In this document: piece by piece, positions 36,681 through 61,713 of the stretch | How positions within the stretch are numbered: the stretch's first letter is position 1 | How the letters are laid out: every line of letters begins with the position of its first letter | Assembly (NCBI GenBank): GCA_043228905.1 | Contig: JBHGNT010000005.1 | Span: 21,080,001 to 21,144,000 of the forward strand | Origin: Azolla caroliniana | Lineage: Eukaryota > Plantae > Polypodiophyta | Direction: 5' to 3' | Length of the DNA stretch: 64,000 bases | The notes under the pieces: model-generated | Database searches by the model: none | What the model was told of the DNA's origin: nothing | What the model saw: the letters and a program-made list of their open reading frames with translations, nothing else | Program-made: the position numbers and the translations under genes

Positions 36681-36832
36681 TCTATTGATTATCTTGTGTA
36701 TTGTTGTGTATAATCTTGTGTATTGTTGTTGCCCATAGCCATCTATAATACACGTCTTTTTTTCGGGAAAATTAGGGTTAGACCCATCAAGCCAAATAGA
36801 AGGGGAAGGAGGGTGTTTAGAATTACCCCTCA

Positions 36833-39800
36833 ATGATCATCAGGATAGGGATGATGATATCAGGACACAACAAGCGATATGAAAGTATTGCGTTGAAAAA
36901 AAAAAGAAAACATCGTCAATTGTTGAAGGATACAAAAGCCACACTCACTAAAGGTAAAGATAGTATTGGTTGCGATATAGGTCTAAATATCACTGACAAT
37001 GGAAGTAATGAGACTACTATCATAGAGAGAAAGGTTGTTGACTATTTCAATGTTCAAACCAAGCACATCAGCAATGAAGACAAGAAGGTAGTACTTTATG
37101 GAATTTTAAAATTATGATCCATTGATAAAGGAGTTAGTTGATTGTGATGGTCTTAATGCAAACATAACATCTGTACTAGTAAATAATCTCTATAATAGTT
37201 TCATATCCATGAGCAGGTCAAAAGATGATCTTGTCTTAAAAAGGTCTAGGCTAATGATGTTACTTAATAGTGATGTTGATGATATTAACATCAGTGTGCT
37301 ATCTAAGGTAATTGGTGTTAGTAGAAATAGTGTGCACAATACATTGAACCGGATAGTTTCCTCGGGTGAAGGAACTAGTCTGCTAAAGCTAACAACAAGA
37401 TGTAAGCCAATGACACCCATAACATCAGAAATCAAGGATATAATCACAATATTTTGGACTAATGAGAGTAGGGTTTCGCCCAATAAGAAGGATTTATGCA
37501 GGAAACGTGTTGGAAGGAGTCAATACGAGGAGCATCCCATTCATCTTCTTGATGTACCTCAGGTATTTACATTCATCTCAACATTTGTTTTGACTTTTCA
37601 ACTTAGTTAGTTAGCTTATTAGCTACCTCCGAATATGACCATACCAGAATAGCTAATTACCTACCTCAGAATATGACCATAGCTAACTAGCTACTAGTAG
37701 TAGCTAATTAGTTACCAGAATAGCTAATTAGCTCCCTCAGAATATGACCATAGCTAACTAGCTACTAGTAATAGCTAATTAGCTACTAGAATAGCTAATT
37801 ACATACCTCAAAATATGACCATAGCTAACTAGCTACTAGTAATAACTTAATAGTGATTGTTAATAGCTAATTTAGATATTACCAGCTAATTCGCTACTAG
37901 AATAGTTAATTAGCTACCTAAGAATATCGAACATAGCTATTTAGCTACCACAATAACTAATTAGATGCCTATGACAATAGCTAATTAGCTACCAGACTAG
38001 CTAATTGCTGCTTATGAGTATAGCTAATTAGCTGCTTATGACAATAGCTAATCCCTTACTAGAATAGCTAATTAGCTACCTAAGAATATGAGCATAGCTA
38101 TTTAGCTACTAGAATAACTAATATACTGTGTATGACTATAGCTAATTAGCTAACTAGCTATTCCTAATAGCTAATTTAGTTATTACCAACTAATTAGCTA
38201 CTAGGATAGCTAATTAGCTACCAGTCATAGCAAATTAGCTAGCACCCACAACTAATTAGCTACCTAAGAATATGACCATAGCTATTTAGCTACCACAATA
38301 GCTAACTAGCTAACTAGCTAATTAGCTGCATATGACTATAGCTAATTAGCTACAAGATTAGCTAACTAGCTATTCACAATAGCTAATTTAGCTATTACTA
38401 GCTAATTACTTGCTAGGATAACTTATTAGCTACCAATCATAGCTATTTAGCTACTAGAATAGCTAATTAGTTGCCTATGATTATAGCTAATTAGCTACTA
38501 CAATAGGTAACTAACTATTCCCAATAGCTAATTAGTTATTACCAGCTACTTAGTTGCCATGATAGCTAATTAGCAACCAGAATAACTAATTAGCTACCAA
38601 TCATAACTATTTAGCTACCAAAATAGCTAATTAGCTGCCTATGACTATAGCTAATTACCTAACTAGCTATTCCCAATAGCTAATTTAGTTATTACTAGCT
38701 AATTAGCTACTAGAATAGCTTATTAGCTGCTATAATAGGTTTGGAGCATAGCTAATCAGCTAATCAGTATGTTCATTTTATTACGCAGGTCGATTTATTT
38801 ATTAGGTTCAGGCGAATGCATACAAATATCAAAGTTCAACTACGAACATTCGAGTCTCTTAAGCCACACTTTGTGAACGCTTGAAGGATCGATACACATG
38901 TTGTTGCATTTACCATGTACAAATGGGTTTTCTCAAGGAGTTTGTTAATCTACTACGTCACCATAACGCCTCCCTAACTAATGCAATTTGCACTTATGAG
39001 TGCCCAATTTGTCGATCGAGACCGCAAGAGCACTGTAAATCATCTGAGCATGTTATTTCTTCCATGAGTTGTCTTTTAGATTTAGTATTGTGTCCAAGAG
39101 AAACTGAGGCCATCTTCCATAGTCATAAATGTGTCATAGGTTTATGTCAAGATTGTGGACCTAGTAGTTTTAGGTGGTATTCAAATGAATTGAGTAGTGA
39201 AATATTAATCTCTGTCAAGTTATTTGAGTCAGTTGACACCAATTTCGAAGGAAAGGTGTGTAAAAGAAAGGATCTAGTCAGGAAGTCGCTTAAACCAAGG
39301 GATTTGGCGTCTCAATTTATAGTATCTCTAGGAAAGTTCATTAAACACAACTTCATTTATTCATGGCAAGCCCATTAGTTTAAGACTTGCATATCTGATT
39401 TTCCAAATGATGTAGTAGTCTCAGTTGTAGATTTTGCAAAGAATTATACTTTCAAGCAGCAGACTGAAATTCAATCTATGCATTGGTGTTTAGTGCAGAT
39501 AACTAACCATTCTTGTGCACATAACATATTTTCGAGTTTCAGGTGATGTTAAAAAAGTAATTCATTTTTTTATTTCTGATGATAAGAAGCATGATACCTT
39601 GTTCGTCCAACATTGTTTAAACTTACATTGGCAATGAGCTAAACGTTTGGAGCTTACTCAACATTGGGTCTGGTTTGACAGAGTTGCGTCACAATTCAAG
39701 GCTAGACGTCCATTTTATTTTGTGGGGAGGTATCCTGTTATAATAGATTTGGAGATGAGATGGATTTTTTTTGGGTTTGGCCAATGGAAAGGTGAACATG

Positions 39801-40670
39801 ATGGTGCAGGTGCTGTTATAAAGCGGGCACTTACCCATGAACAACTAAAGGCAGGTGGTGTGTAGATGAATTGTCCAGCACATGTAGTTGAATTTTTAAG
39901 AGCTAATATGTCAACGAATGCAACTGGTGTTTATTCCTCGTAGGTCCGAGGTATCAAACGTGAATTTTGGGAAGTGGCGATAGATGAAGTAAATAGGGAG
40001 AAGACCTGGGAGTGCCAAGGAATTCCCGAATTGCGATCTCTCCATGCTGTTCGCGGTTATTCTAGGTTGGATGGTCATTGTATTGCGGTTAGAGAATTAA
40101 TTTGTTTTTGCTTCCATTGTGTGCAGGAAAATTAGAGGTATTGTTTAAACAAAGCATATATTCAGAATTGGGAGTATCATACATTGAACGATAACGAAGC
40201 AGTTGATGGAGAAATAGAAAAGAATGAGGACTTCACATATGAACGATAACGAAGCATATATTGCGGTTAGAGAATTAATTTGTTTTTGCTTCCATTGTGT
40301 GCAGGGAAATTGGAGGTATTGTTTAAACAAAGCATATATTCAGAATTGGGAGTATCATACATTGAACGATCACGAAGCAGTTGATGGAGAAATAGAAAAG
40401 AATGAGGGCTTCACATATGAAGGACGTGGGGATACTCTGAGTGATGTCTTAAATGTTGGGGATAATTTCGTTGTAAATGCAAAAGAAGGCAATTTAGAGG
40501 GCGTTGATTTCTATATATTGAAGTGCACGGTTAGTAAATAGTGTGCAACGCAGAATATTGTAGATGCTTGGGGAAATTTTGTATCTATTGGGACATTCTA
40601 CATTGAAGGTTTTTTTTATGCAAGACTAGATTATTACGATGTGTATAGGCTATTAGAAGACTTTTAGAAT
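36833..40670 (+). pseudogene. Sola2-like DDD transposase (copy A), 2 exons, intron 37563-38788; frameshifts and stops
   Basis: Motifs FESLKPHFV..TCCCIYH, DFAKNY..EIQSMHW, FISDDKKHD, WVWFDRVASQFK, GQWKGEHDGAGAVIKR, CFCFHC. Phase-0 splice CAG|gtattt..cgcag|GTC. The Sola2 assignment comes from remembered motifs, not a search. Confidence 0.78.
37608..38762. repeat. Intronic array of the palindrome TAGCTAATTAGCTA
   Basis: Dozens of TAGCTA/TAGCTAATTAGCTA copies filling the transposase intron. Confidence 0.95.
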
Positions 40671-40924
40671 TAACACTATCATGAAATTAGCAATCCTGAA
40701 CATACTCTCAAAATTACACAGTAGATAAGTTACTCAAAACAAGCAATTTAATTCTTCATTGATTAATCTATCATCAAATTACATATTTATAACATCCCAT
40801 TGGCAATGCCTTCAAAACGACTATAAATAGCTAAGCTCTTGCTGGTAAGTAGAACTTCTCTACATATATTATATGCATACTGAGCTTGGTATGGAGTCCA
40901 CAACCATGCAATTAGTTGGCAACT

Positions 40925-43900
40925 CTATGCTTTCACCAAGTACTGTTTAGGCATTTCCTCGGGTAGAATGCGACAACATCTGCGAATGTTGAAGTAATGC
41001 CGGAAATGTTCTATATCCAGAATCAATGTATTGTCGGCATTATAATCTGGACAGGTAGCCCAAAAATCAGAAAGTCTTTTGAATCTTGCAACATCCTTTT
41101 GCTCACATTTCTCTCGTGTCCACTGGCCCTTGAAATGTTGTCGCCACTTTGGGAAGAATCTTTCTACACACTTCCACACATCTATACATGGTTTTTCACT
41201 CCAAATAAACAAATCAAAGTATTGCAAAGCCCACTCTAGAAATCGATTTGCGTCCCTCCTTGGTGTCATATATCGCACACTCATCAAGACTTTATCAAGC
41301 TCCAAGATCAAGGCTCTTATTTTGACTTCTAATGGTTTAAGTTTCCATTCCTGTAACCGAGACTCTATTACACCCTTTACTTGTAGCACACGATCAATTT
41401 CAATCAAATCAGGTTCGGTCGACACAATTGGTCTCCTTTTCCTCTTCAAACCCCTGGTTGACTGTGTTGGGCCTGGCTTCACATTCTGGTGCTCTTGTAT
41501 TGTCGACTTAGTCATTAGCTCGATGCATGTAGATATTGATTTGGTCGATATTAGCCCACTGGTATCAAATGTTGCATCTACCTGCAAAATTAGATCACCT
41601 GTGCAACATGCTTGATCAACTTGCGTGACCAAATCATTTGTGTCAGTTGCTACATCTACTTTCAAGATGTGGCCCTCTAAACACGCAACAACATCAATAG
41701 TTTCCACATTGCCATCGGCCTTAGGATCAATAGATTCAAACCCTTTAGACTCTACAACATCAGAAAACACCATCATATTCACACACAAAGTAAATAACAA
41801 TTTCACAAAACAACATAATGAACATGACATATTTTCCATCATAGAACAACATGAACATAATTATCTTGGAGAAACATCATAGAGTTCCATTGCATAATGT
41901 GGATCAAGCAACAACCAATCTGAGGCTTTACTTGTCCAAATAGATCATAGTAAAACTTCATAAAACCCTAGGAAAATCGCTAACAATCATATCCCACTAA
42001 TAAGTATTTCGCCCCAATTCAAGAGCCCCTTGACCGAGTAATTGGTCTTGTCCCCGATCGTGACCCCTTCTTCAGCCTTTTTCTAGCCGGTTGCCCATTT
42101 AGCCTTGCTTCTTTCACCCATTGCACAAGTCTATCCTCATCCGACAACCTTTCCATCACCTCAGCAGCGGCTTGCACATCAACCGTGTCTTGCGCTAGCT
42201 TTCTCAGTACAGTGGAATATGTTTGGAAATTATCAGTAGTTGGGCTCGGTGGGGTGGAATCAAGGTTTTGGGATTCGAAGAAATGTTGCATCAAGTGTTC
42301 AAAAACACTGTTGTTGTGAGCCTCAGATTTGCATGATGTTTCCAATATTTCATGGTTTTTCACATCGTTGCTTAATTCAGTACAATCTTCTAAAAGAATA
42401 GGGTGGAGCTGATCTGAAGGAGATGTGATAGCAAGACTCTTACTTTCAACCAAGTTGGCAGATATCTCCTCATCGGTTGCAACATCATCAGCACCGGACA
42501 CCTCATGTGCCCTCCTTAATCCACAAGATTCTACAACAACAAGGTAGCTAATTAGCTACTCAACTACATCTTAGCAAACTAGCCATTCTTCTAGACTTGC
42601 ATAGTAGCTAATTAGCTACCACTGACCTAATTGCCTGCTTCTCTTAGGTATGATACTAGCTAATTAGCTACTTTTTCTCAATATGGTAGCAACTAATGAG
42701 ATACTCTACTAAAGTATGGTAGTAGCTAATTAGCTACCAGTTAGCTAATTAGCCACTTAGCTAAAGTATGGTACTAACCAATTAGCCCCTATAACTAAAG
42801 TATGGTAGTAGCTAATTAGCCATTGTACTAAACTATGGTAGTAACTAATTAGCTACCACTTAGCTAATTAGCTATTGTACTAAACTATAGTAGTAGCTAA
42901 TTCACTACTCAACTAAAGTATGGTAGTAGCTAATTAGCTACCACTTAGCTAATTAGTTACTCAACTAAACTATGGTAGTAGCTAATTAAATACTACTTAG
43001 TTAATTAGCTATCACTTAGCTAATTCACTACTCAACTAAAGTATGGTAGTAGCTAATTAGCTACCACTTAGCTAATTAGTTACTCAACTAAACTATGGTA
43101 GTAGCTAATTAGATACCACTTAGTTAATTAGCTATCACTTAGCTAATTCACTACTCAACTAAAGTATGGTAGTAGTTAATTAGCTACTGTACTAAACTAT
43201 GGTAGTAGCTATTTGGCTACCACTTAGCTAATTAGCTACTCAACTAAAGTATGGTAGTACCTAATTGGGTACCACAGTGAGCTAATTAGCTACTCAATTA
43301 AAGTATGGTAGTAGCTAATTAGCTACCACTTAGCTAATTAACTATATGTTAGCAAATTAGCTACTACACTAAACCATAATAGCTAAATAGTTTCCACACT
43401 TTATACGGCTTACCTAATTAGCAAAGATGTAACTAATTAGCTACATTATGGTCACAAGCAACAATTTTACCTGTTAGTTTTCTCACTCATCTGGGAGAGT
43501 TGTACTACAATCCCCCAAACGGAATGGAGCAATGCGACGGGCATATTGAAAACAAACGATATGGTATGTGTGCTGGCATGGTTGTAGGTGAACCAACAGA
43601 GTAGCAAATTTGTCCTCTACACGTAATCCGCAAGCGAAGCAACGTGCTTGAATAGTCAACATATCGTTTCCGGGTTCTCCTTCATTTGGTAAGGGAGCAA
43701 GAATGTTCAGGTCCAATTCTTGTCTGCTCCTTACCATCTCCTTCAGAAAATGTACCTGTTTCGTAAGGCAACTAACTACCTATTCTTGACGGGAGTATTG
43801 TTCCTCCAACGCAATCGAGAAATTTACCGATTAATTATTCCTTAATGAGGAAGATACAACAACAAGAAACAAGAATCATTGACTTACTTGTAACTTGTCC

Positions 43901-44795
43901 AAATTGTAATCAACGACAATATTTACATCTAGAAGGTCCATGTTCATTGGAAGAACTTGGATCTTTGTCTGCAGTTGAATTTTCCGTTGGGGATCTAGCG
44001 ACCCCTCAATTTGAAGCTCTTGTTGAGCAACCTGTTCCAAATAATGCCTCATCAACACATTTTCATGTACTAGTTATTTATAACATATTACATACTAGCA
44101 AAACAATAGGTACCTGAATCTTATTTCTAATTGTTGTACTTGCCAAAGTGACTTTGCTCTCCATCGTAGTAGCCAATGTTGCTTTCTCTAACTCAGTCTT
44201 TAAAAACACCAATGTCTCACAGGCTTCATGGACATTTTTTAGCATAGAGCTAATCAATGTCTCACCTGTGTCATCGGCATTGGCTTTCATTGTGTGTCGG
44301 TGTCGCGTATACTTGCTGGTTTGTTGGGAGTCGGTAGTGGCATCATGAACTGCCATGCTCCAAAATCTTGCCATTTTTTGTTGCAAGCTCCCCATCTTCC
44401 GGCATCTTTCTACTGATGCCTCACCATAAATTGCCCAAGCTACCCTGTACATTTCAGGTTCACGAGATTCCTTCGCTATTTTCCAATACTCGTATGCAAA
44501 AGCTCTGGCAAATGAAATAGACAACTCGTTGTTGACCAGGATCTCTTCATGTACTTTCTGGTGCAGTCTCATGCAATCATCATACAGGTCTGGTCGTACA
44601 TGCTTGACCTTGACCTTGCCTTTCACTCTAGGCACTTTATATACTGACATCTAGTCTACATCACTAATCAATCTATTCGTTAGAACAGCATGGTCAATAT
44701 CGTCGAGCGACAAACCATATATGTGGTGAAAGTCCTCCTTTGTCTCGCAAAATTTTGCGAAGTTCAACACTCTAGGATAGGGGGGAACGAGCCAC
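40925..44795 (-). pseudogene. Companion gene of copy A: unknown N-terminal domain, coiled coil, RING finger, NLS-like basic patches, C-terminal FCP1/NIF (HAD) phosphatase-like domain
   Basis: Exons ~44795-44114, ~44070-43890, 43755-43471, 42530-~42010 and ~41750-40925, several with GT/AG borders. RING: CFACG..PCQHTYHIVC. FCP1-like: LILELDKVL..RRDANRFLEWALQYFDLFIWS..FKRLSDFW..YNADNTLILD. A few in-frame stops. Confidence 0.72.
42545..43445. repeat. Second TAGCTAATTAGCTA array, in the companion-gene intron 42531-43470
   Basis: Units such as CAACTAAAGTATGGTAGTAGCTAATTAGCTACCACTTAGCTAATT; donor at 43470, acceptor at 42531. Confidence 0.93.
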
Positions 44796-45709
44796 CTGAA
44801 ATAGAAAATCAGTAATCACAATTGGTGCAAAAAGAAAAATTTTAATGTGAATTTGGTGCAAAATTACAACACTTTGAGATAGTAATTTGAAATTTGTAAT
44901 TTGTCCTTTTCAACATGTATCAGAAATCAACCACTTAAAAAATCAAAAACCCTAATCAGAATTTGTCATGAGAACTGGTGCAAAATTACAACACATTGCG
45001 ACAGTAATCAGAAATTTGTAATTAGAAATTTGTAACCATAAACTTGTTATCTGAAATTTGTAATCAGAAACCCTAAACCACTTAAGGAAAACACAAACCC
45101 TAATTATCACTAAATGCAGAAATCAACCGTAATACGAAATTCTGTCAATCAGAAACACACTTGCTACTACACCCTGAAAGATGAACAGGGACATCCTTGG
45201 TTGGGTCTCCAATGACTTCACCCTATTCGATTTTTGGAAAAGATGAATAGGCACCAAAGTTACAAACAGTTATCAGACAGGAAAAAAAAAGTTTTTATAC
45301 CATGTAACTGATACATACTTGGACGAGGATCGAACTGGTCGTGTGTTGTAGCTCTAAAGGTGCAATGTCGTTCTCAGAGTTTTTGTGTTGCTGAGGGAGC
45401 TTCGTCTGCGTTCATGCTCAAAGTACTCCATATGTTTGGAGTTCGAACTCGAACTCAAGATTATTAGGAATTTGATGACATTCAAGTTGACCTTAGATGA
45501 TGGCACTATTCCCCAAGTTCCACTATGTCAGAAACCAAAGCTCAAATATTTGAGTATTCTCATAAATTAAATGACATGTATTTAACAAATAAAACTTAAA
45601 ATTTCGTAAACCATCCTTATGATTTTACCCACAAAAAACTAGCTAAACAAATAGCTAATTAGCTATAATAGTGTTTCGACTCGCATGCTTTTACCTTGAA
45701 CCAACATGC

Positions 45710-47361
45710 GACTTCCAACGGCATTTTCTTCCTCATTGGGGGCCTCAATCGGAAAGAGGTTTGGTTTTGCTTGTCTTCTAGGCAATCAACACACTTATCC
45801 AGAAGCACTTTCTTCACCTCCCGTAGGAGTTCTTTTTCCGCTACAATCTGCATTCCCTTCTAGCTCATCTGGCACAACTTCTTATGCCACAACTGACCGG
45901 CGTTGTTAGCTGCCACGTTTACCTCATTTCGGCATAATCAGGCATGCATTAGATATAGTATGCTATTTTTTTGGGCTCGAGCCATGATCAGGCTCCCTTT
46001 GAAGAACTTCATGACGTCATTTTGGATGCTACCCGTGTAGCCTTCGTCACCTAGCCTACTGACTGATATCATATTCAATCTGACTTCTGGAACGTGTCAA
46101 ACATCTCTCAACACTAATCGACGTTACAAGACACACATCTCCGATGCCAAAAATTCAGCATGCTTCTTCATTTCCCATTTTTACAAGATCGTGGTCTCCG
46201 GCCTTGTATGATGAGAAGCACTTTCGGTTGGGGGTTAGGTGAAACGACGCACCCGAATTGACCACCCATGTCGATTCTTCGCCGGCGAGATTGAGCTCAT
46301 TTTGTTCACTGATGAACAATAGGTCCTCTTCACTCACAACGATTGTTGAGGTGTTCTTTCTGTCGGGGATCTTCTTCAGCTCTACACCATTAGTTCCCCC
46401 TTTCTCCTCTCGAAAGTGTCGACAGTTCTTTTGAATGTGCCCTGACTTCCCACAATAGAAGCACGTGGGCCTTCCCCTCGACTTCGACCTCATCCCCGAC
46501 TTGTCTCGATTTTGGGGACTCCAATTTCAGCTTCTTCCTCGATTCATGACACTTTCTGTGACAAGGACCTTCGGGTTAGTATTAGACTCTTGGTCCTTTC
46601 AGCGATCTTCTTCATTCAATAAGCTTGACTTCACCTGCTCTAGGGATAAGTGTTTCCCATCTGATCCCGCGTTGCCCAATGTGACAACTATCAGTTGTCT
46701 GGAAGGGATCCCAACAACAATAGTGCTAATACATCATCATCAAGAGGCACTTCTAAAGAGGTGGTCTGATTTATTAGTCCTTGGAAGACATTAATGTGCT
46801 CCGCCATGCTGGAGCTGTCTTGATACCAGAGTCTCACGATGTTTCTGAAAACTGAGAATTTGTTCACTATGTTCTTGTTTTCGAACATTACGCCAATCTT
46901 CTTCCAGAGGACGTCAACACTTGTCTCTTCATCAAAGTTGTTGTATAAAGTCATGTCTATGAAACACCTTATATATGTTGCCGCCTTCAGATGCATGACT
47001 TCCCAAGTCGATGCATGGATCTTGTTTGGCTTACTTCTACCAAACTGCACTGGTAGCCACATGTCTTTGCACACCAACATCTCCCACATCTTCGACTTCC
47101 ACACTGAATAGTTGGAGCCGATAGGTTTGAACATGCCGCCAAAGTGTCCATCCATTATTCTAGTAACACTTTGCTAGGATCTAGACCGGCCACAACCAGT
47201 TTCACACTCGGTTCGGGTGCAAATAATTGAGATAAATAGTACACAGACAGAAAACGAGAAGGCAAAAAATAGGTACAGAGACACAAAATCTTTTATGTAG
47301 AAAACTTGACTTAGGAAAAACCACGGGGGTCCACAAACCCCAAGAAACAAAATCACCATAA
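45710..47361 (-). mobile_element. 5' part of copia-4: 5' LTR fragment 47172-47361, gag, protease, integrase N-terminus
   Basis: SNYSVWKSKM, CFYCGKSGH, WVVNSGASFH, CVDCL..KQ; LTR matches 28933-29059. Confidence 0.88.
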
Positions 47362-48238
47362 TGTTAGGATTTTGGTCCCTCCGGATGGGATATGAGTACC
47401 CGGCAAGGAAGACCCGGTGAGAACCGGATGATGCAGGCTTGGTGAGAACCTCTCACCGGATAAAGGGACATATAGGTAAATATGTTTCTGAGAGCCCATT
47501 AGGGTTATATTTGTAAATAGTCCTAATTTCATATTAGTATAAATATGACCTAGGGCAAACACTTATGGTGTTGGTTATTCTTTTGTGTTGTTGTTGTAAC
47601 TGATGTATAGAGAGAGAGATAGATATATAGATAGATTATATTATCGTCTTCGGAGGTCAAATATGACCTATGAGACCAAAAATATTACATTTCACGTGAT
47701 ATGTGTGAAAGTGAGTAGTGACTCTCGATGTTCAAGAACTTTACCAATGAATGTTGCAATCGTGAGTGCACATTGTGGTTGTGAGAGGAATTCATGCAAA
47801 GATTGGGCTCGATCGAAGAGATGTGGAAAGCATGGTCAAATATGATCAAAGGCAGAGCATTATATCAAAGTGTGATACTCAGACTCGTGAACTTGTTTAG
47901 GGCAAAGTGTGCATAGCCGACCACTCTCATCACTTGTACCCCAATGCCTTGTTTCACATCGCAATGCATGTGAGCTAAGTCGCATGGAAGCAATGGTTCG
48001 AATGGCAGATAACGGTATGGGCTCTAACATTTATGGATGTGTACGATTTCCCCGTTCCGCAAAGAATATGGTTTTGTAGTTAGGTGCAATATGTGTAGTA
48101 TAATGTGTGAAGCGTGAGCCTCCACATTTGTCCCATGTCATGATACATTGGCGTTGAAAAATGCCTCAGAGAGAGAGAGAGAGAGAGAGCGATTATCTAT
48201 TGTAACCACCGCCAGGGAAGAGAGATACATTGGCATTG

Positions 48239-48279
<41 letters not shown>

Positions 48280-48455
48280 CCGAGCGATTATCTATTGTAA
48301 CCACCGCCAGGGAAGAGAGTGAGCACGAGGTCGTTGCCTCTGTGCCCCCTTGTTGTATTCTTTTGACATAGTATTAGTTTCGAGTCTGTGGGCTCCTGTG
48401 GTTTTTCCTTCTTAGGGTTTTCCACGTTAACATCTTGTGTACTCTCTTGTTTATT
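47362..48455 (+). repeat. Copia-type LTR (related to the copia-1 LTR, opposite orientation) interrupted by a LINE fragment
   Basis: Starts TGTTAGG; AGCCCATT..GTTATATTTGTAAATAG..TATAAATATGAC and GAGGTCGTTGCCTCTG match the reverse complement of the copia-1 LTR. Confidence 0.75.
47606..48170 (-). mobile_element. Third copy of the LINE A 3' end, inserted in an (AG)n tract
   Basis: Reverse complement of ~31620-32088 / 34440-34915, flanked by AG repeats. Confidence 0.88.
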
Positions 48456-49589: not shown

Positions 49590-52527
49590 TGTAAAAGTTG
49601 TGCGGAAACGTGTGCGTAAACGCAGAGTAGTTCAGTAAACACAGAAAACACAGAGATGGAGAGGGACAAGGAGAGACACTATAGATCAAATTCAAAATAA
49701 TTCTTTGTTCTGTACATACTTCGTGCTCAGTGAGCACCTTATGTATAAGCCTTGACAATCAAGCTGACACAAGTACTGACAGTACTTGAATCCTCATAAA
49801 TGAGCCGACTACACAAACTCCCAAAATTATACCTTTACGAGGAATAACGCTCTAACGGCCTCTTTTGGTTTTCACACCGATGTGGCCCTGTTGTGCATAC
49901 TTTTCCAGGCACCCAGTCTACGCATTGGGTTACGCTGCGTACTTCGCACCGAATGTTGAGCTTGTCTCTCAACATTCCCCCTCAAGCTCAACTTGAGGTA
50001 CCACTTGCTCCGCCGGATCTACGCTCCGATTCCTTCTGGCTTCACGCCTCGCTCGCGCTGCTCAACTTGTTCGATTCTGCGCGCTTTGACCCTTTCGGCC
50101 CTTCTCAACTCCCTTGTTGTCGCGGTGTCGGCGCGTCCTTCGCTGCCCTTTTCTCTGCATGGCCTTCAGTTGATTCGGCGTATCTGAATCAAACATACCG
50201 ATTGAATTGAACTCTTCCGATTCAATTTCACTCTCATCCGAATTGGATGTCTCCAATTCGTCCTCAATCTTCCGGCCCCTGACAACATCCGACCACATCT
50301 TAGTCTTGGCCTTATCTCCCCCTATTTCACCTGTCCTCGGCTGCTTCTTATGCTTACAGCCCTTGCTTCCGTCTTTGGCTTCTTCAACCGGTTCGAAGTC
50401 AAATTCTCCATGCGACTCCGCATCTTGGTCAATTCCGTCATGATGCTTACCTCCGCTCCTTTCACACTCTTGTCCCTGTTCTTCCTTTCTCCCCCTCAAG
50501 TTTAGCGTGTTAAGGTGACGCAACCCAAGCGCACCTGAGAAATGTCGTAACTTGTCGAGACCAAGAGGTTTTGTGAAGATGTCGGCAATCCGCCGATCAG
50601 TCGAAACATGCACCAATTCGACTTCTCTTGAAAGGACCCGCTCACGGACAAAATGGTAATGCACCTCAATGTGCTTGGTTTGGGCGTGGAACACGGGGTT
50701 TTTCGCAAGGTGGATACTGTTAAGGTTGCCGCAATAGATTGTCGTCGGATCAGACACCTCTACATGCAGATCTCGTAATAGCCGTTTCAGCCAAATTACT
50801 TCGCATGTAGCAACAGTCGCCCCTCGATATTCGGCCTCCATGCTCGACAGTGCTACTGTCGGCTGCTTCTTGCTACTCCATGCGATCGCCGCACTTCCCA
50901 ATGAGAATGCGTATCTAGATGTGGATCGACGATCGTGGGTTTTTCCGGCCCAATTGGCATCCGTGTAGCCAACTAACTGTTCGGCAATACCTGCCCAATA
51001 AAACAACGCCATGTCTTTCATGCCGCTGACATAACGCAGTATCCGTTGCATACACTTAAAGTGTTCGGCCATAGGCTGTGACGTGAATTGACTAATCATG
51101 CCAACCGGGTAACTGAGGTCCGACCGAGTAATAGTTAAATAGATGAGGCTTCCGACAATCTGTCGGAACCGTGTCGGGTAGCACGCCTTTCCCGAATCTC
51201 GGCGAAGCTTTACGTTTCAGTCCAGAGGGGTCTAGAACTTACAGTTTGCCATCCCGAACTTGAAGAGCATATTCATCATGTAATGATGTTGACTGATCAA
51301 TATGCCTTTGGGGTTACGGATCACTTCGATCCCGAGGAAGTAATGTAGGTCACCAAGATCGTTCATTTCGAATGATGCTTCAATCTGAGACTTTACGCGG
51401 TGGATTTCTTCTGGATCAGCACCGGTGATGACTAAATCATGAGCATACAATAGAAGAATAACCGGTCCATATTGACCTTGTCAAACAAACAAAGAAAAGT
51501 CTGATTTCGACGACGCAAACCCGATCTTATGTAGCTATTGCGTAATCTTCGCGTTCCAAGCTCAGGGGGCTTGATTAATTCCATAGAGTGACTTCTGCAA
51601 TCGGCAAATTGCCGAAGTGTTTTGTTCAAATAGAAATCCGAGGGGTTGTACCATATACACATGTTCCTCAAGATCACCGTGCAAGAACACATTCTTGACA
51701 TCCATCTTATGTAAGTGCCACCCCTTCGCGGCTGCTACGGCTAGCAGGACTCGCATGGTAGTCATCTTCGCGACAGGTGCGAAGGTCCTGTCATAGTCCA
51801 CGTCGTGCTTCTGCACGTAGCCTTTTGCTACTAAACGGGCCTTGTAGTGATTGACGGAGCTGTCCGTGTTGTGTTTCACTTTATACACCCACTGGCAGTC
51901 GATCGGCTTCACACCCTTCGGTGCGTAAACCACGTCCCATGTCTCGTTCTGCGTTAAGGCACGCATCTCTTCCTCCATCGTGGCACACCAATTTGCGTCT
52001 CTCGCCGCTTCTGCGTAGCTCTCCAATTCACGCACTTCCGCCACTCGCGTCATATACGCATAATGGTGCGCCATGTATTCATTAGACCCGTACCTTTTTA
52101 CGGGGTTCTTCTCGCGGGTAGATCGGCGTAAATCGTGATTACCCGATTTAACGACCTTTTCGGCCGATTTTGACCTCTTCTGCGGAGGTTTCTTTACGAT
52201 TGGCTAGATGTCAGATTCACTTTGAACTGACTCGGCGCTGCCAAAATTGTACTCCGACATTTTCTTCTTGCCCTTCTCCTTGCGCATAAATCGTCTCCTC
52301 GACTCTTTACGCGGGGGCATCATGGCCGAGTCTCCACTGCTTGTCATCTCATCATCTGGTTGGCCATCTCGGCCCAACTTTTCACTCGGCCCGCATAGCC
52401 GAAATGAGATCGGACTCTCTTTCAGAGTTCCGACATCCTCATCATGCGGAGGCATTTCAACCTCGTTGATCTCTTCTTCAGAAATCGGAGTAGAGTCTTG
52501 AGCTACTGGAGGTGAAGGCAAGTACCA
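49590..52527 (-). mobile_element. 3' part of a Ty1/copia element (copia-6): 3' LTR 49590-49974, PPT, RH, RT, integrase tail
   Basis: MDVKNVFLHG, YFLGIEV, GYTDANWA, HAQTKHIEVHYH, IADIFTK. The LTR shares its terminus TGTTGAGAGACAAGCTCAACA with the LTR at 61714. Confidence 0.92.
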
Positions 52528-52798
52528 GGGTCGAAGCATGCTACGGTGTACCAACTTTTGGCCAAAAATTTAGTACTAAATCGAGTCCGAAGAAAATAAA
52601 CATTAAAAATTGAAAATAAAACAATTATCGTCTATTGAATGGTGTTCAATTTCAAATAACAAATTCATTACGTCACACTCTAATGTACAAAGATATTATA
52701 CGTCACACTCAAAATGTCCCAAGGCCGTATTTAATACATTAATTGTAACTTCATTCTCCTAGGTAGAGTTGTATGAAAGCACACCTGGAGAAGGTTTC

Positions 52799-53212
52799 TG
52801 TAAACGATTGCTTGCGGAAGCGTTAGAGAAGCAGAGAAAACAGAAAATATGCAGAGAGTACACGGGAGAGACAAAGAGAGCAGAACGTAAAAGTTATATT
52901 CAAAATAATAGTAAACACTCTGTACATACTCTGTGCTCAGTAGCACTATTTATACAAGTCCTATGCGGACTGACAGAAGTACTGTGTACTTCAATGCTCA
53001 CACAAGCACCTGACACTAACTCTGAGACTATAACTAGCTAGTAATCTAACTTATTACTAGGCTTCCGGTTACTGCTGGATCCAGCTAACCGGCTCTCTGC
53101 TCACCAACTCTGTAGCTTGCCGGCTCGGTTGCTCACCGGCATATCGATTTGTCTCACTTACCGGCTCAGGCTTTTCAGCCGATCCGGCTCCAATTGACCT
53201 TGCCGCTCAACA
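52799..53212 (-). repeat. Solo LTR (copia-6/7 related)
   Basis: TGTAA..TCAACA flanked by a perfect 5-bp TSD GTTTC. Confidence 0.9.
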
Positions 53213-53250
53213 GTTTCGAATGTGATAGTTGGTCTGTCTCTGTCTCTCTC

Positions 53251-53287
<37 letters not shown>

Positions 53288-53549
53288 TCTATCTCGAAGT
53301 TGTCAGACAGAAAGTGGCAGAAAGTTAGAAAGAAGACACATATCTATTACCTATCTCTCTCTTTCTCTCTCTCTCACTCCACCTTCGATTCTGTGTTTCC
53401 CCGCGTAGTTGTTGTTGCGTTCCCCTCTGTGCCAGGTTTGATCTTTGTCTCTATATATGTAGAGATTTCTGTTTCCCTGGATTGATTTTCTTTCCTTGTG
53501 TATGCTCGTTTGTCTCCTCTGTTAATGCTCATTTGTCTCCTCTACAACA

Positions 53550-56500
53550 GCCTCGTCAACAACCTCTTGCATATAGGTGATTTTGAAGGCTTGGTGTGCT
53601 CCCAAGGTGTGGTACCTCTGCCTTGACCTTAGCTCCATCTGCCTTCGACCCATCAATCCATGTGCAGCTTGTACGACCTCCAGGTATTCTCTGTGCTACA
53701 TGCCCAACTGGTATGTTTTCGTTTTCTCTGTGTTTCCTGTTTGTCTGTTTTTTAATTTGTATGTGTATGGGCATTTTTAGGTTTTGATTATTCATAGTCT
53801 ATGTGTTGCATGCCCAACTGGTATGTTTTCATTTTCTCTGTGTTTCCTGTTTGTCTGTTTTTAATTTGTATGTGTTTGACATGGACTAGTTTTCTTCTGA
53901 CTATTTAGGGTGGTTGTGTGTTTGACATGGTTTGTACATGCAACTTAGATGGAGTTGGCTATGATGAGTTGCTATGTTTTCGTTTTGTTGGTATGTTTTT
54001 GTTTTCTCTGTGTTTCCTGTCTGTCTGTTTTTAATTTGTATGTGTTAGACATGGATGAGTTTGCTTCCGACTATTTAAGGTTTTTGTGTGTTTGACATGA
54101 CTTGTACATGCAATGTGATGATTTGCTATGTGTTGATGGTAATTTGATGAGTTTTATTCTAGTACATGCATATTCATTCAACGAGAATAATGATGACTAG
54201 GAAAATAATGAGAAGGACACCCATAAAGAAGACATTGATGAAAGAGAAAGTGAAGACACTAGTGAAGGAAGGAAAAAGGACACCTATCAAAGAAAAGCAA
54301 GAAGACACCCACAAGAGAAAGGGTGATGAATTCATCAACAAAGAGAAAGAAGATGTACCACTCCATCATTCGAGACACACCTCTTGGATGGAGTTATTTC
54401 CTTCAAGCACGACCTGAAGTTTATCCTGAGCTGAAAGAGTGATTGATAAAAACCTAGGGGTCAACACATCACGATACAAGGCGAGGATTCCACATAAGTG
54501 GATTGAAGAGGGAATATGTGAACTTATTGAAGACGAGATATGAACATGTTTATGATACAAATCAAATATGTAACAATGAGGTGGGTACTGTTTTTGCACG
54601 TTCATTTGCATGTGAAGTTCAGGGTGGCATCGACGTAGATTGGAAAGATTTTAATCAGCACCAGTCAGAACATTATAAAGGGTCCTCCAGTACCAATGCT
54701 GGGTTGAAGTCATCGGGAACCTCTCATGTGGATATTCCGGCTACAACACCTGTCACCAAGTTCAATCTGCAAAGGTACGGGCCACAATGACTGAAAAGCA
54801 TGAACAGATGATGGCTAGTTGCATAGCTTCTATGAGCTCAAGAATACAAGCACTACTTGCTGATTTGGAAGCAGTTAAACCAATTGAGATACAGGCAGAA
54901 AAGAAATTCTCTTCATTAAAGACTACATATGAATGGATTGCATTGACAATCCAAAATTCAGAACGTGAGGTGTTGAAAGAGGAGTTGAAGAAAGAGCTAA
55001 ACAATATGGGCACTCAATTAGGTTCATAGATGAGAGACCTTGATACTTGCAAGAATGCACATTCCGAAATAGACAATAAGTTGTTAGCTTTAAAGTTGAA
55101 TTCTGAGAAACTTTGTGTTCATCTATAATTGAGCACCCAAGTGGTATGGAAAGTACCATTACTAGTATAGCTATATCACGGTATTGGCTTTAAAAGTTAT
55201 TTATTTCTACTTCTGTGGTATAAATATCATATTAGCTAATATATTATAACTTGTGTTTGCAATCTGCTAGGTGTATATTTTGTGGCCTCGGATTCAAGCT
55301 GGAGGCTATGGATGTTGTGATTACACTGTGGTTGCACACATATCATGTGCTATGTGCTAAGTATCATTTTGAGAAAGAGAATATATGTATGGATTGTAAA
55401 ACTACAATTGCGGTTGAGTGGTACTATGCTTGGGGTTTAAAAGTACACCTGTACAGTATGTGGCTCTACTATTCTATTGTTTGTATTATATGATGTCAAT
55501 TTACATTTGGATTAGAACTAGTGTACGCCACAATTCATACTTCAAATTTAGGAGAACAATGGATTAGTATTAGTGTATCTCTAACAACTAATATGTGGAA
55601 CCCTCATTATGTGGGTTAGTATTGGCAATACTCTTAATATATAATTGGTATGTGTAGTTGAAGGGATATTTTCCAGAATTAGTACTAAAAGGGAATCAGG
55701 TACAACATCGTCCAATCTATATTGCAACTTGCCTAGTACTAGTTTAGTAGACACTATACTTGTAGTACACTGTTGACTGTTAGTATTGTTTGTGTAACTT
55801 GGGAATTAGTATTAGTTATGTAATTTGGGAACAAGGTGTATAGTAAATTGTTGAATATTAGTATCGTTTGTGTAATTTGGAAATGAGGTGTGTCAAACAC
55901 AATCACATTTAGTACTAATATTGTTCAAGATTAATACTGTTGGTGTAATTAGTACAAGTTATGTAATTAGGTGTGTAGAACACATATCACGTTTAGTATT
56001 ACTTGTGTGCAAAATACCACGTTAGTACTAAAATCCAATCTACATTTGTTGGATTAGATGTTAGTCCAATCTATATTACAACGTGCCTAGTACTAGTGTT
56101 AGTACACACTATACTTGTAGTACATTGTTGATAATTAGTACTTAGCGAGTAGTACATTGTTCATGATTAGTACTAGTTCTGTAAATTGGGAACTAAGTGA
56201 GTAGTACATTGCTCATGATTAGTACTAGTTTTGTAAATTGGGAACTAAGTGAGTAGTACATTGCTCATTATTAGTACTACTTGTGTAAATTGGGAACTAA
56301 GTGAGTAGTACATTGTTCACGATTAGTAGTAGTTGTGTAACATGGGAACTAGGTGTAGCTTAATGAATTATTAATGCAACTCTTGTGACCTACATTGTAT
56401 ATTTTATATCACGGTACTAACCTTAAAGATTTTTTGGTTTCTTGCAATAAATGTTGTAGTGTCAAGCAACTCCACGCCAGGGAAGGTAATGGAACAACTG

Positions 56501-58175
56501 GCCCCTGTGCCTAAACCCTCGGTATCTGCTGAACATTCCAAGGTTCAAGGACCATCATTACCAATAACCTATGAGTTTTATGATGAAGATGAATGTATGA
56601 GAAGGGCCATTGGAGCAGTGGAACATATGCTTCTACAAACAAATTCCCCAAGCTCTGGTCAACATCAAAACAATCCAGGTAACACAAATTTTGCCAACAT
56701 ATCTTAATTCTCATTTGAGAAAGTGTTGAATGCCTAATTTCTTTAGAAATAGAGCCAACTAAGAAGAGGAATACTGCAAGAATGTTGTATGGAAAGGGCA
56801 AGGAAGGCAAAGTTGAATGCAATGGTGAGACATATATGTTCTCACCTGTCCGCAGAGTTGTCAACCTAATGCATTGTCTAATACCATGTACTTGTGTTAC
56901 TAGCTAATGACGAAATGATCTTTGGTGAGGGAGATACGAGTCCAAAACCTGATCATGAAGACGAATTTATCACACTCCCAAGTACACGTCAAAAGCCAGT
57001 TTTTGAAAACAATGATTTAGATCATAACAACCCTATGATAGTGTTGCTTTTGGTGCATTCTATAGATCATAACAACCTTGTTGAGCACTTAGATGTTGTG
57101 GAGAAGATGACCGAGCCTGCCACTTGCAATGGGGTATCTACGGCTGTACAGTATGACGATGTAACAATAGGTAAAAATGTGGCTCTTAACCCTATGTTCA
57201 TTGTTGTTGGTATGTTTGCAAACTTTTGAGTGTGTGAGTTGATACTAATATTCTTTGGAATCCCATTATTTAGGTTTACAAGAGCAGTCCGATTCCCAAT
57301 TGCAATCAAATGAATCGGGAACTATATGGAGCACAAGTGCAAAGTCAGATTCTAGGATTAACCTTTGCACGGAGGCAGACTCTGGAAGCACATCTTCTAC
57401 ACATGAGGATTGTGAGAAAAACGAAGCATTCATATTTGAAGAGTAGTTGGCATGTACAAACAACAATTTGTCTAAAGAAGCACATGAGGAGTGTGGAAAG
57501 AATATGGCAAGTACTAAAGAGAAGACTGATTGTACTGAGAATGTATCTGTAGTGTCTAAAGATTCCCATGAGGAGTGTGGAAAGAATATCGCTAGTACTG
57601 AAGAGGAGCCTGATTGTATTGAGAATGTGCTAGTAGTGTCTAAAGAATCCCATGAAGATTGTGGAAAGAACATCGTTACTAATGAAGGGGAGCCTACTAG
57701 CATCACCCATGAGGACCAGGCAATAAAGACCACCCAAGAAGGGGAGCACGGTTCTCTTAAGAATGAGGTGACAACCACCGTACAAGAGGAGTTGACCCAA
57801 GAAGGAGAGCACAGTGGTCTTAAGAATGAGGTGACTATCACCAGCCAAGATTTTGCCTGGAGTATTGTTGTAGCCCACATACAAGAGCCTAATTGTACTG
57901 AGACTGAGCATACTAGCAACAACATGAGTACTAAAATAGCCCACATTCAGGAGATGAGTGATAATTTTTCTATCGACAGTACCTTTGTGGATGTGTGTAC
58001 AAGCATTGCAGTTGCAGAAAACACAGTTGCTCTCTCAAGCTTGCCACTAGTACAAGGTGCCCGTGCATCCACGCCTGTCTTTGATGCCTCTAATGATGAA
58101 GTGCCACTTAGTCAGCTGATACCTAAAGGCTTTAAGATACTGATTGTCTTTCGATTGTACTTGAACTTTAGCTGA
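53550..58175 (+). pseudogene. Companion gene of copy B: unknown domain, coiled coil, RING finger, acidic repeat region
   Basis: 54503-54790 (YEHVY..NNEVGTVFARSFACE..VDW) aligns with copy A (HQKVH..NNELSISFARAFAYE..VAW). Coiled coil 54787-55029. RING 55263-55440 (ARCIFCG..LHTYHVLC..C..C). Exon borders approximate. Confidence 0.68.
55700..56370. repeat. Intronic array rich in TAGTACTA/TAGTAC (~50-bp units) after the RING exon of copy B
   Basis: For example GGGAACTAAGTGAGTAGTACATTGCTCATGATTAGTACTAG repeated 3-4 times at 56150-56350. Confidence 0.82.
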
Positions 58176-58908
58176 ATTGTTAGTGATGTCTGAAATTGAA
58201 CTATTTGGTATACCAAAATACTATCTCATTTATCTGAAATAGTTATACCAGTGTCTTTCGATTGTACTTGAACTTTAGCTAAACTATTAGTGATGTCTGA
58301 AATTGAACTATTTAGTATACCAAAATCCAGTAGTTATACCAGTGTGAAATTCTATATTGCCAATTGTAGAGAATGAAAATGTATTCTATTGTTAACTCTG
58401 AAATGTTGTGAAGATCAGATCACTCAGCTAGTGTTGTAGTGTAATCTGAATTTCTATATTTCTAATTCTGAAAGATCTTTGGTGAGGGAGGTACAAATTT
58501 ATCACACTCCCAAGTACACTCCCATGCAGCCATGATTGTGTTGATTACAAATAAAATTCTATATTGTTAACTGAGATGTTATATACAGTTCCTTATACCA
58601 GATGAAGATTTAGAAGACTGGTATATACTGTCATGCAACCGAACTTTACATCAGATGTATGTATCCGTCTAATTGAGATACTTTGGGAGACTACTATGTA
58701 TTACTTAATACTTGCAATTGACATTAGTACTAAACTAATATGTATATTGATACTTGCGTTAGTACTAATATATATATTGATACTTGGTATGGTCTCCTTG
58801 AGTGCACATGGTTAGAGTTGAATAATGACTTGTGTGCACACAATAGAGACTTGATAGTTGAATAAGTTTGGGCCATATATAGGCTACTAAGTATTCAAGA
58901 GTTCACAT

Positions 58909-59100
58909 CTTAAACCATAGAAACAAGAAACTCTATAATTACCATAAACATTGACAATACAAAAGTATTGAAGACTTCACACCTTAAACCATAGAAACAA
59001 GCAACTCTATAATTACCATAAACACTAACAATACAAAAGTATTGAAGACTTCACACCTTAAACCATGGAAACAAGCAACTCTATAATTACCATAAACACT
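58909..59100. repeat. 74-bp tandem repeat (about 2.6 copies) between the convergent genes of copy B
   Basis: CTTAAACCAT.GAAACAAG.AACTCTATAATTACCATAAACA at 58909, 58983 and 59057. Confidence 0.88.
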
Positions 59101-59286
59101 TACAAAACAAGCTCAATAAATAGTCTCAATACATCAAATATATCGATTCATAATACATAATAGAAGAAAGACGAAATACATCGATTCATTTGTCAATCAT
59201 CAAAATTAATATATCAATACATCAAATAGTGAACTACAAGTGGATGTTTTTCAGTTTTCTGGTACAATATATTGATAGGGTGACTT

Positions 59287-60172
59287 TCAAGCATTAAATA
59301 GAGAGACCTCCCCTAATATGTGCTCATGAACCTCTTGGGGGACCTTGTAGACAATGTTGTATCCCTTAACCTTGTGCTTTGCTTGAGTCATATTGAATTT
59401 GATCGCAAGAATGGCATCAACGTAGATTATTGCGATCGGTGCTTCTTTTAGTAATGCATATGTGTTCTTGCACTGTGGCAACTTTGCATAATAGTTTCCA
59501 TACACGACAGACTCACCAAGGTTGAAATTGTTGCCTCAACCATCCCTCACCACTTCTTTCAATAATGTCTTGCCTTGCTTGCACACCACAATGTAGTAGT
59601 CTTCTAAATCTTCATTCTGAGGAGATTTGAGCACTGTAAAATGATCTCCAACTTCCAATAAAACTGCCAAGTCTTGATGTTGGTTGTAGTATAGAATATC
59701 GTTTGAATGTGCATCGTCTTCAATGTCATCTTGTCGTTCAAGCTCAAGCTTCTGCAGCTTCCAGGGCTCGACGATTGATAGGTTGATGCATTTATCCCAA
59801 GCTTCATCTATACACATGGAACAAAAGCATGATAAAGTACGGAGTAACAATTGTGTTGTGTCCTTGCGGCTAAACCCTAATACACAATGGGTGCTGCATG
59901 TGCCTTTCACGGTTTTACAACCATATGATTTAGTTCTATCAACCTCATCAGCACGAACTTCAACAAACAATCTATTCGTACCATCATTTGACATCTTCCA
60001 TGTTAGCCACTGCACTACATCATGTGCATTTTGTAACTTAGCACCATTATTATCCAACTGCTCACTTGTAAGGGCACGTTTGATCACAACCCCCGCACCA
60101 TCATGCTCTCCTTTTCCATGTTCAGACCCGAAGTAGTTCCATTGCAGACGAATGTTGAATAAGGAGAAATAC
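59287..60172 (-). pseudogene. Last exon of the Sola2-like transposase (copy B), one in-frame stop at 59536
   Basis: cag| then YFSLFNIRLQWNYFGSEHGKGEHDGAGVVIKRAL..TVKGTCSTHCV..LSCFCSMC..LEVGDHF..DYYIVVC; collinear with copy A 39740-40670. Confidence 0.82.
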
Positions 60173-60199
60173 CTGCTTTTGTATCTCAGGTTTCCAACA

Positions 60200-61620
60200 A
60201 AATTAGTACTATGTTGTCAATCGAGCTTACTACACATCCAGTAATACTGATTTAGTACAAATACAAAACAAAGCATAGCACATCGTATCCATTGAGAACA
60301 CTCTACACTTATTAAAAGATAAATAGTACTATGTTGTCAACCATGTGAACTTGGCATCCATTAATAGTAATTTAGTATGGATACAACACAAGGCATAGTA
60401 CAATGAATTCATGGAAAGCACTCTACATGAATTAACAGATAAATAGTACAAACTCTTCAATATCGGATAATACTATGTTGCTGACGACGAGTACTTTACA
60501 TTCATTAATACTGATTTAGTACAAATACAATACACAATACAGTACAATGTGTCCACGGAGAACACAACCCTCCTTAGAAGATAATTAGTACTACAACACA
60601 TGTACTTTACATCCCCCAATAAACACTGATTTAGTATAGATACAACACATAGTACAATACAGTGTGTTCATGGAGAACACTCATCATGGATTAATAGATA
60701 ATTAGTACGAACTCTTCAATATAAGACAATACTATGACTACAAGATGTACTTTACATCTTCTGATAATTACTGATTTAGTATAGATACAACACCAAGTAC
60801 AATACAGTGTGTTCATGGAGAACATTCAACATTGATTACTAGATAATTAGTACAAACTCTTCAATCTAGGACAATACTATGAGTAAAAGACATGTACTTT
60901 ACATCCTACGATAATTACTGATTTAGTATAGATACAACACACATTACAATACAGTGTCCATGGAAAACCCTCAACATGGATTAAAAGATAATTAGTACAA
61001 TTCTCTTAAGGACGGACAATACTATGAGTACAAGATGAGTACTTTACATCCTTCTATAAACACAACATAGTACAGATACAACACACAACATAGTACAATG
61101 TGTTTATGGAGAACACTTCACATGGCTTAAAAGATAATTAGTACAATTCTCTTAAGGACGGACAATACTATGAGTACAAGACGAGTACTTTACATCCTTC
61201 TGTAAATACTGATTTAGTATAGATACAACACACAACATAGTACAATGTGTCTATGGAGAACACTTCACATGGCTTAAAAGATAATTAGTACAATTCTCTT
61301 AAGGACGGACAATACTAGGAGTACAAGATGAGTACTTTACATCCTTCTGTAAATACTGATTTAGTATAGATACAACACACAACATAGTACAATGTGTCTA
61401 TGGAGAACACTTCACATGGATTAAAGATAATTAGTACAATTCTCTTAAGGACGGACAATACTATAGAGTACAATACGAGTACTTTACATCCTTTAGTAAA
61501 TACTAATTTAGTAAAGATACAACATACAACATAGTACACTTTGTCTATGGAGAACACTTCACATGGATTAAAATATAATAAACACAGATTCACGTGACAG
61601 GACAATACTATTTGATCAAT
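60200..61620. repeat. Intronic satellite, ~10 units of 145-147 bp (a few of ~118 bp), rich in TTAGTA/TAGTAC
   Basis: GATAA(T/A)TAGTAC recurs at 60318, 60438, 60580, 60697, 60842, 60987, 61133, 61280 and 61426. Confidence 0.93.
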
Positions 61621-61713
61621 CAAGAACAATTAACTTAGTTACAAACAAAATTAGTATGCATGCATCCATGTGAATAGTGTTGTGTTCGAATAGTTACAAA
61701 CATAATTAGTATG

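Follow-up and report, generated by a model that had tools for sequence, protein, structure and literature searches.

The 64,000-nucleotide stretch of the Azolla caroliniana genome analysed here (assembly GCA_043228905.1, contig JBHGNT010000005.1, positions 21,080,001 to 21,144,000 of the forward strand; hereafter the window) contains two dead copies, A and B, of a two-gene Sola2-like transposon. In each copy a short palindrome close to the end of the element recurs in long arrays within an intron of both genes, and the two copies differ in their palindrome. The arrays are real and beyond chance, and comparison with related elements indicates that they most likely represent a lineage-specific, selected binding code of the transposon.

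End palindromes recur in intron arrays of both genes

Copy A is complete and occupies 35361-45696 (10,336 bp). Copy B (52528-61713), of the B lineage, is interrupted at 61714 by a Copia long terminal repeat (LTR), and its remainder, including the right end, lies outside the window (copies and palindromes are given without strand). Both copies encode a transposase and a second, convergent gene (hereafter, the companion), and both are broken by stops and frameshifts.

The 14-bp palindrome of copy A, TAGCTAATTAGCTA, has 19 exact copies, one near each end (35405-35418, 45 nt inside the left end, and 45652-45665, 31 nt inside the right end) and 17 in two introns. At the left end there is also a half copy (about 35386), and more TAGCTA-like sites follow up to 35500. 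Allowing at most one mismatch, 57 matches were found, all inside copy A, compared with 0.01 expected from shuffled sequences; those in introns span 37612-38762 and 42545-43443. TAGCTA reached 52 and 40 occurrences per kb in the two introns, compared with 0 in the exons of A and 0.3 outside the elements. The first array (37608-38762) lies in predicted intron 1 of the transposase (37563-38788, plus strand) and has a commonest core spacing of 20-21 bp, and the second (42545-43443) lies in a predicted companion intron (42531-43470, minus strand) with core spacings of 19 and 33 bp. Both arrays end 13-50 nt short of the predicted GT/AG sites.

Copy B has a different palindrome, TTTAGTACTAAA, at 52569-52580, 42 nt inside the end at 52528. 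Its predicted companion intron (55443-56459, plus strand) carries a TAGTAC array at 55560-56370, with a 52-bp unit at 56140-56355, and its predicted transposase intron 2 (60173-61713, minus strand) carries an array of a 147-bp unit at 60200-61620, with about five TAGTAC-type sites per unit. TAGTAC occurs 27 and 15 times per kb in these two introns, compared with 0.2 outside. The full 12-mer has a single exact occurrence, and the copies of the 147-bp unit hold mostly half sites. Within one element the array periods differ (20/71/162 and 19/33/52/123 in A; 52 and 147 in B), and the motif is missing from the remaining introns of these elements.

These results largely bear out the original prediction, made from the letters alone, that a palindrome lies just inside both ends of A and fills two introns up to near the splice sites, that B has its own palindrome about 40 bp inside its terminus, and that the two arrays of an element differ in higher-order unit; all its coordinates were correct on re-checking. 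Its view that TAGTAC dominates the B arrays holds for density, with the qualification that the 147-bp unit contains mostly half sites. It had also described the motif as essentially absent from exons. This is literally so for A, but the A 14-mer carries a stop codon in all six frames and therefore cannot lie in an exon, so its absence there proves nothing; in B, six TAGTAC sites fall in companion exons and four in the intergenic gap. Exon exclusion was accordingly rejected as a sign of function in copy A.

Introns were predicted using GT-AG ends together with the continuity of the protein in relatives. None of the RNA runs searched contained the region. In one run that is possibly RNA, three short contigs mapped to exons of related copies (~90% identity), none to the arrays, and none contained a splice joint. 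The first intron of the A companion holds a separate, non-palindromic repeat with telo-box-like TTAGGGTTT cores (window 44800-45100; positions 1080-1500 of related locus L006), which is expanded in L006 and L008.

End and intron motifs change together across lineages

For comparison we collected 59 loci (367 kb; designated L plus a number) from Adiantum nelumboides and metagenome contigs, representing about ten lineages. The array motifs are TAGCTAATTAGCTA in A, AGTTATATAAGT with TAGCTAAAT in A2, TTAGTACTAA in B, TACCTTCCATAGGTA in C, ACCACTT-NN-AAGTGGT in D, GTGGTAATTAGT in E, ATTAATGGT in F, TAGGTGAAA in G, TATTAGCTAA in H and, weakly, AGTACTAT in I. In each lineage the motif occurs once or several times in the outermost 140 bp of the ends, forming subterminal clusters. 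The outer positions 1-13 of the terminal inverted repeat (TIR) are common to all lineages, whereas positions 14-25 and the motifs differ.

Positions 14-140 of each end were scored against the enriched intron k-mers of each lineage. The cognate array gave the best score in 7 of 10 lineages at both k = 7 and k = 8, and the observed diagonal was reached in 0 of 200,000 permutations, a value that is optimistic given hand-set array borders and the relatedness of the lineages. The misses were H and F, which have TAGCTA-type sequence in common with A, and I, with its faint array; C, D, E and G each matched themselves alone. Within the TIR itself, lineages C, D, F, G and I carry a fragment of their own array motif at positions 14-25 (p = 0.003 at k = 5; p = 0.013 at k = 6). 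Thus, by per-lineage k-mer enrichment, end and intron motifs change together.

Among the 59 loci the A motif was found only in A-type loci. The arrays could have been generic genome-wide satellites or separate insertions of MITEs (miniature inverted-repeat transposable elements), and both candidates were rejected on this ground.

Two other sequences were noted. At the transposase-side end, around positions 30-45, a TGTC-nnn-GACA palindrome is conserved in A, C, D, E, F, G and H (window 35390-35405; L003, L021-L024, L028, L037 and L059), with TTTTGGCCAAAA in its place in B; it is possibly a second, common recognition site. A copy in the liverwort Calypogeia (L004, 13060-13520 and 18200-18680) has TAGTACT arrays downstream of its transposase that resemble the fern B motif.

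The motif is kept while its surroundings turn over

The orthologous introns of three B relatives (L002, L015 and L001) gave no BLAST alignment to the window, although their flanking exons are 82-87% identical, and all are TAGTAC-rich. The A introns align at only ~67%, a level also seen between the two different introns within an element, so that the motif alone accounts for the alignment. In the 147-bp unit of B, motif columns vary by 7.9% and spacers by 15.4% (p = 0.002; 0.005 without CG/CHG columns), and in the C array by 3% and 17%, respectively (p = 0.006). In the D motif a gap of 2 nt separates the two half-sites in all 37 cases, and those 2 nt differ between the transposase and companion introns of one element; in the A motif, too, the central bases are the most variable. 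In the full-length element L058, the motif is dispersed through several introns and both ends and forms no tandem units.

Compensatory changes were not in excess (A, 4 observed and 7.8 in shuffles; D, 4 and 4.8), in a test that a mismatch cap makes conservative. It is therefore the sequence, not pairing, that appears to be kept, and selection for an RNA or cruciform hairpin was rejected. Helical phasing was likewise dropped as a general rule: spacings near 20, 31-33 and 41 bp occur in A, D, E and G, are absent in B and unclear in C, and are confounded by tandem units.

Given the fixed half-site spacing, the retention of the motif while spacers turn over and the lack of compensatory changes, we conclude that the motif is most likely under selection as the site of a dimeric DNA-binding protein, at four separate places in the element. 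The original prediction of selection on the motif rather than simple copying thus appears likely, as ends and introns also co-vary.

No motif contains CG or CHG, and the array spacers are CG-poor (observed/expected ratio 0.04-0.4, compared with 0.2-0.6 in other non-coding parts). Copy A shows an excess of C-to-T change in the CHG context (20% versus 3-7%), so the family is probably a target of methylation. CG-poor arrays together with CHG decay fit anti-silencing, and also fit plain methylation-driven decay.

The transposase and companion genes

The first transposase exon of A (37122-37562, plus strand) encodes a predicted N-terminal tri-helical helix-turn-helix (HTH) domain (HTH_29, E = 0.004), which is matched in 7 of 17 homologues (best E = 2.4e-6). 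This call rests on Pfam and predicted helices, a fold search with the N-terminus having given no significant match; protein searches of the spliced models were done exon by exon. Exon 1 is under purifying selection. The putative recognition helix is nearly identical in A and H, lineages with a common motif, a likeness that common descent also explains. The transposase body of A (38789-40665, plus strand) has a Cys-rich region, DDD core motifs and a C-terminal CFC motif, with stops and frameshifts. It includes a 178-bp tandem duplication (40081-40421) that is absent from a related contig and is therefore a lesion of this copy. In B, the last transposase exon (59287-60172, minus strand) runs from the third catalytic Asp motif to the C-terminus and is 80-92% identical to intact relatives. 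The transposases of A and B are 34-39% identical. A and C-G carry the transposase array in intron 1, and B, with its short intron 1, carries it in intron 2; the array has never been lost in these lineages.

The companion of A (minus strand) consists of an N-terminal domain, with a fold that found no match, followed by a coiled coil (44081-44795; ratio of nonsynonymous to synonymous substitution, dN/dS, 0.26 against L006), a RING-like exon (43471-43776) and a last exon with an FCP1/NIF-like HAD domain (40925-41842; PF03031, E = 3.7e-6) that lacks the canonical DxDx(T/V) motif. This degenerate FCP1/NIF-like domain was seen in the companions of A and lineage D. In B (plus strand), an N-domain with coiled coil (54150-55150), homologous to that of A at ~17% identity, precedes a RING-like exon (55270-55442). 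In both A and B, dN/dS values of 0.20-0.44 indicate purifying selection on the N-domain and RING. One closely related pair of D copies has a companion dN/dS of ~1, which would be expected had one of them decayed once inserted. Two elements distant from the fern clades (L005 and L058) also have a facing RING gene, L005 with the N-domain and coiled coil as well, so the two-gene layout is old.

Searches of the companion pieces against Pfam (E up to 1), PDB sequences, folds and the Atlas gave no VANC, DUF1985, PMD or DNA-binding match. A PMD/DUF1985 origin of the N-domain was thus not reproduced by sequence or fold searches, with a structural model too poor to exclude one (predicted local distance difference test, pLDDT, 52).

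Three further observations concern the companion region. The acidic tail of the B companion contains 84-bp and 63-bp coding repeats (window 57469-57850), and such repeats are known from the variable regions of VANC proteins (PMC5735166). In the distant element L005, an open reading frame with a B3 DNA-binding domain (13192-13449; PF02362, E = 1.3e-7) lies between the transposase and the RING companion, and the intron arrays are purine-rich and non-palindromic. Internally deleted derivatives (L052 and L053) pass from transposase exon 1 directly to the RING and N-domain exons.

Which protein may read the motif

The original prediction proposed either the RING companion or the transposase as the reader of the motif. 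An element-encoded reader seems likely, and the inner TIR leans to the second of these options: it co-varies with the motif, and transposases bind TIRs, which favours the transposase HTH over the companion. The presence of arrays in both genes suggests control of expression, more than end recognition alone. We therefore put forward, at somewhat below even confidence, a model in which the arrays are landing pads for an element-encoded protein, most likely the N-terminal HTH of the transposase.

Under this model the motif would be bound by a dimeric, element-encoded protein. Its end copies would serve end recognition, and the intron arrays would act as dense landing pads that load the reader onto both genes of cognate full-length copies. 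The loaded reader would then regulate both genes, either by self-activation against host methylation, as the AtMu1 transposase and Spm TnpA do, or by autoregulation, and could recruit the RING companion as an effector. As the specificity of the reader drifts, ends and both arrays would follow, giving each lineage a private code. The arrays would sit in introns because no other large internal region is exempt from coding constraint.

Several observations, in addition to the optimistic permutation value, weigh against a selected site read by the transposase. The inner TIRs of A and B lack their array motif, and in D the motif adjoins just one end. The contrast between motif and spacer is weak in B on A/T columns alone (p = 0.1) and absent in the companion array of A. 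Co-variation of the HTH with the motif is no better than that of other element parts, as all parts are inherited together.

The companion may instead be the reader. In such a VANC-like system, its N-domain, or the RING protein with a partner, would bind arrays and ends and lift or block the silencing of cognate copies, with the RING perhaps ubiquitinating a silencing factor. The layout is close to that of VANDAL elements, with family-specific tandem motifs in introns and terminal non-coding DNA (PMC5735166); the companion is old and selectively maintained; and the lack of CG and CHG in the motifs, the CG-poor spacers and the signs of methylation in copy A would suit such a role. On the other hand, the companion resembles no known DNA-binding fold in the searches above, made with a poor model, the occurrence of motif fragments within the TIR favours the transposase, and VANC motifs are non-palindromic and VANDAL TIRs degenerate. 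In addition, no companion was found within 10 kb of the TAGTACT-bearing liverwort copy, which is weak evidence as this copy is degraded. We regard this explanation as possible and rather unlikely. For the original proposal of a VANC-like analogue, the family-specific motifs in introns and ends stand, whereas the companion has no VANC, DUF1985 or PMD similarity and the element is not Mutator-like.

That the arrays are functionless is improbable. End palindromes would have been copied inward during gap repair, expanded by slippage or template switching, and survived only in introns. Internal tandem arrays are common in DNA transposons and palindromes promote slippage; exon exclusion in A is forced by stop codons, and closely related copies differ widely in array length and units. 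However, copying would bring flanks along, whereas ends, the two introns and orthologous introns have the motif alone in common. Moreover, the match between end and array recurs in at least seven lineages, half-site spacing is fixed while central bases are free, and the enrichment in L058 is diffuse and non-tandem; in the array-bearing elements, other introns are devoid of the motif. Recruitment of a host transcription factor, or of splicing factors on the RNA, in place of an element-encoded protein is very improbable: several motifs do hold TAAT/ATTA or branch-point-like CTAA cores, the arrays lie in introns of transcribed genes and the ~20-bp spacing in A and D fits phased protein loading, but the motifs differ radically among lineages in one host and co-vary with the TIR, the arrays occur in both orientations and also in untranscribed ends, and no compensatory RNA-hairpin signal was detected.

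Assignment to Sola2

The element starts with GGG or GAG in A, B and more than 15 relatives (5'-GRG ends), and the relatives have the common end consensus GGGTGAAAGCATG. The TIRs are 25 bp long in A, L058 and L059. In A, the left TIR (35361-35385, plus strand) starts with GAG and is paired with the right TIR at 45672-45696 (minus strand); its outer 13 bp are the part common to all lineages and its inner 12 bp are lineage-specific. The TIR of B (52528-52553, plus strand) starts with GGG. Target-site duplications (TSDs) of 4 bp were found in L058 (TTGT/TTGT), in a MITE at L049 (ACTA/ACTA) and in L059 (GAAA/GAAG). This MITE (L049, 2107-2512; also in L051) is 406 bp long and has the family ends and no arrays. 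The transposase of intact relatives has three Asp motifs of the Sola2 type.

Sola2 elements, reportedly described by Bao et al. in 2009, are said to have GRG ends with short TIRs and a 4-bp TSD. We call the family Sola2-like rather than Sola2, as it was judged by ends, TSD and Asp motifs. It resembles Sola2 in the Asp motifs of its DDD transposase, 5'-GRG ends and 4-bp TSD, and differs in its conserved second gene and lineage-specific intron arrays, which are not known from descriptions of Sola2. The Sola2 subgroup is listed in PMC4455052. A Pfam search of the transposase gave no transposase domain match, as has likewise been reported for Sola transposases (PMC5751038). A literature search, with coverage that excluded most subscription journals and Repbase, turned up no account of a plant Sola2 with two genes or of its arrays.

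Insertion setting of the two copies

Copies A and B are 7 kb apart, each inserted in a Copia element. Copy A is flanked by AGAC and TGAA, so that a TSD was not recognisable, and no empty site was recovered by reconstruction. Among named proteins, those closest to the element's come from the fern Adiantum nelumboides. The surroundings are repeat-rich plant DNA with Copia, Gypsy and long interspersed nuclear element (LINE) remnants and pieces of a host gene at 23588-25582, which we take, from its motifs, to be exons of a trichome birefringence-like (TBL) gene. A 57-bp perfect-looking hairpin (23512-23645) overlaps one end of a TBL-like exon.

Between the left end of A and its transposase lies an 84-bp repeat with a 242-bp higher-order unit (35932-36477), unrelated to the palindrome. 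The 5' end of copy B contains a solo-LTR-like insert (52770-53210) that L002 lacks; on the reverse strand it is 79% alike to the Copia LTR at 61714-62099. In L006, a B-type end (1-110) is located 490 bp beyond an A-type end.

Relation to other self-regulating transposons

VANC hypomethylates and activates cognate copies via motif arrays in introns and terminal DNA (PMC5735166). The element described here resembles VANDAL/VANC in its short, family-specific tandem motifs in introns and terminal non-coding DNA, which differ between related families, and in the accessory gene beside the transposase (PMC5735166, PMC10398659). VANDAL elements are Mutator-like, with 9-bp TSDs and degenerate TIRs, whereas the present element is Sola2-like, with a 4-bp TSD, intact 25-bp TIRs and a transposase without a Mutator-like element (MULE) match in Pfam. 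The VANC family is of the DUF1985 type; the companion, which has a RING and a degenerate NIF domain, shows no resemblance to VANC. The motifs here are mostly palindromes and echo the TIR.

Clustered motifs allow the Arabidopsis AtMu1 transposase and Spm TnpA to activate cognate copies and render them hypomethylated (10.64898/2026.08.24.746577). Common to those systems and the present one are family-specific motif clusters near the ends, there read by a transposase-derived DNA-binding domain, and co-diversification of motif and lineage. In Spm TnpA and AtMu1, clusters and hypomethylation are confined to the termini, whereas here the largest clusters are kilobase-long intron arrays in both genes; neither the CACTA termini nor the 3-bp TSD of Spm/CACTA was found in our elements. 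Because transposase, ends, TSD and accessory protein all differ, the element belongs to neither VANDAL nor CACTA and is at most an analogue of the VANC system.

Two algal systems offer partial parallels in the available sections of their reports. Red-algal Plavaka elements with PAG genes (10.1101/2025.02.11.637652) are likewise large and have accessory genes and tandem inverted-repeat arrays proposed as self-binding sites, and Ectocarpus Sola1-1 (PMC12477816) is a large DNA transposon with an accessory gene (ParB-methyltransferase) on the opposite strand. Their accessory proteins have ParB-like and DNA-modifying domains where the companion has an N-domain and RING, and those sections do not report co-variation of end and intron motifs.

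A broader possibility, which we consider worth entertaining while leaning against it, is that a diversifying self-recognition system arose in an old Sola2 lineage of land plants, separately from those of VANDAL and Spm. Its element-encoded reader, either the transposase HTH or the companion N-domain, would bind the lineage-specific palindrome arrays of both genes, bring in a RING ubiquitin ligase or pseudo-phosphatase and lift host silencing. This would be a third family of programmable anti-silencing reader-motif pairs, with at least eight natural specificities.

Sequence-specific self-regulation has, to our knowledge, been shown in few plant transposon groups (VANDAL, Spm and AtMu1), all in flowering plants. 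The element described here would extend the same logic to another superfamily and to ferns, and probably to bryophytes, and it offers about ten natural pairings of motif and lineage. It makes testable the identity of the reader, the co-evolution of reader and site at four places, and transposon activity in the huge, heavily methylated genomes of ferns. If the companion proves to be the effector, its N-domain would represent a chromatin-related module of a new kind and might serve as a tool for targeted de-silencing.

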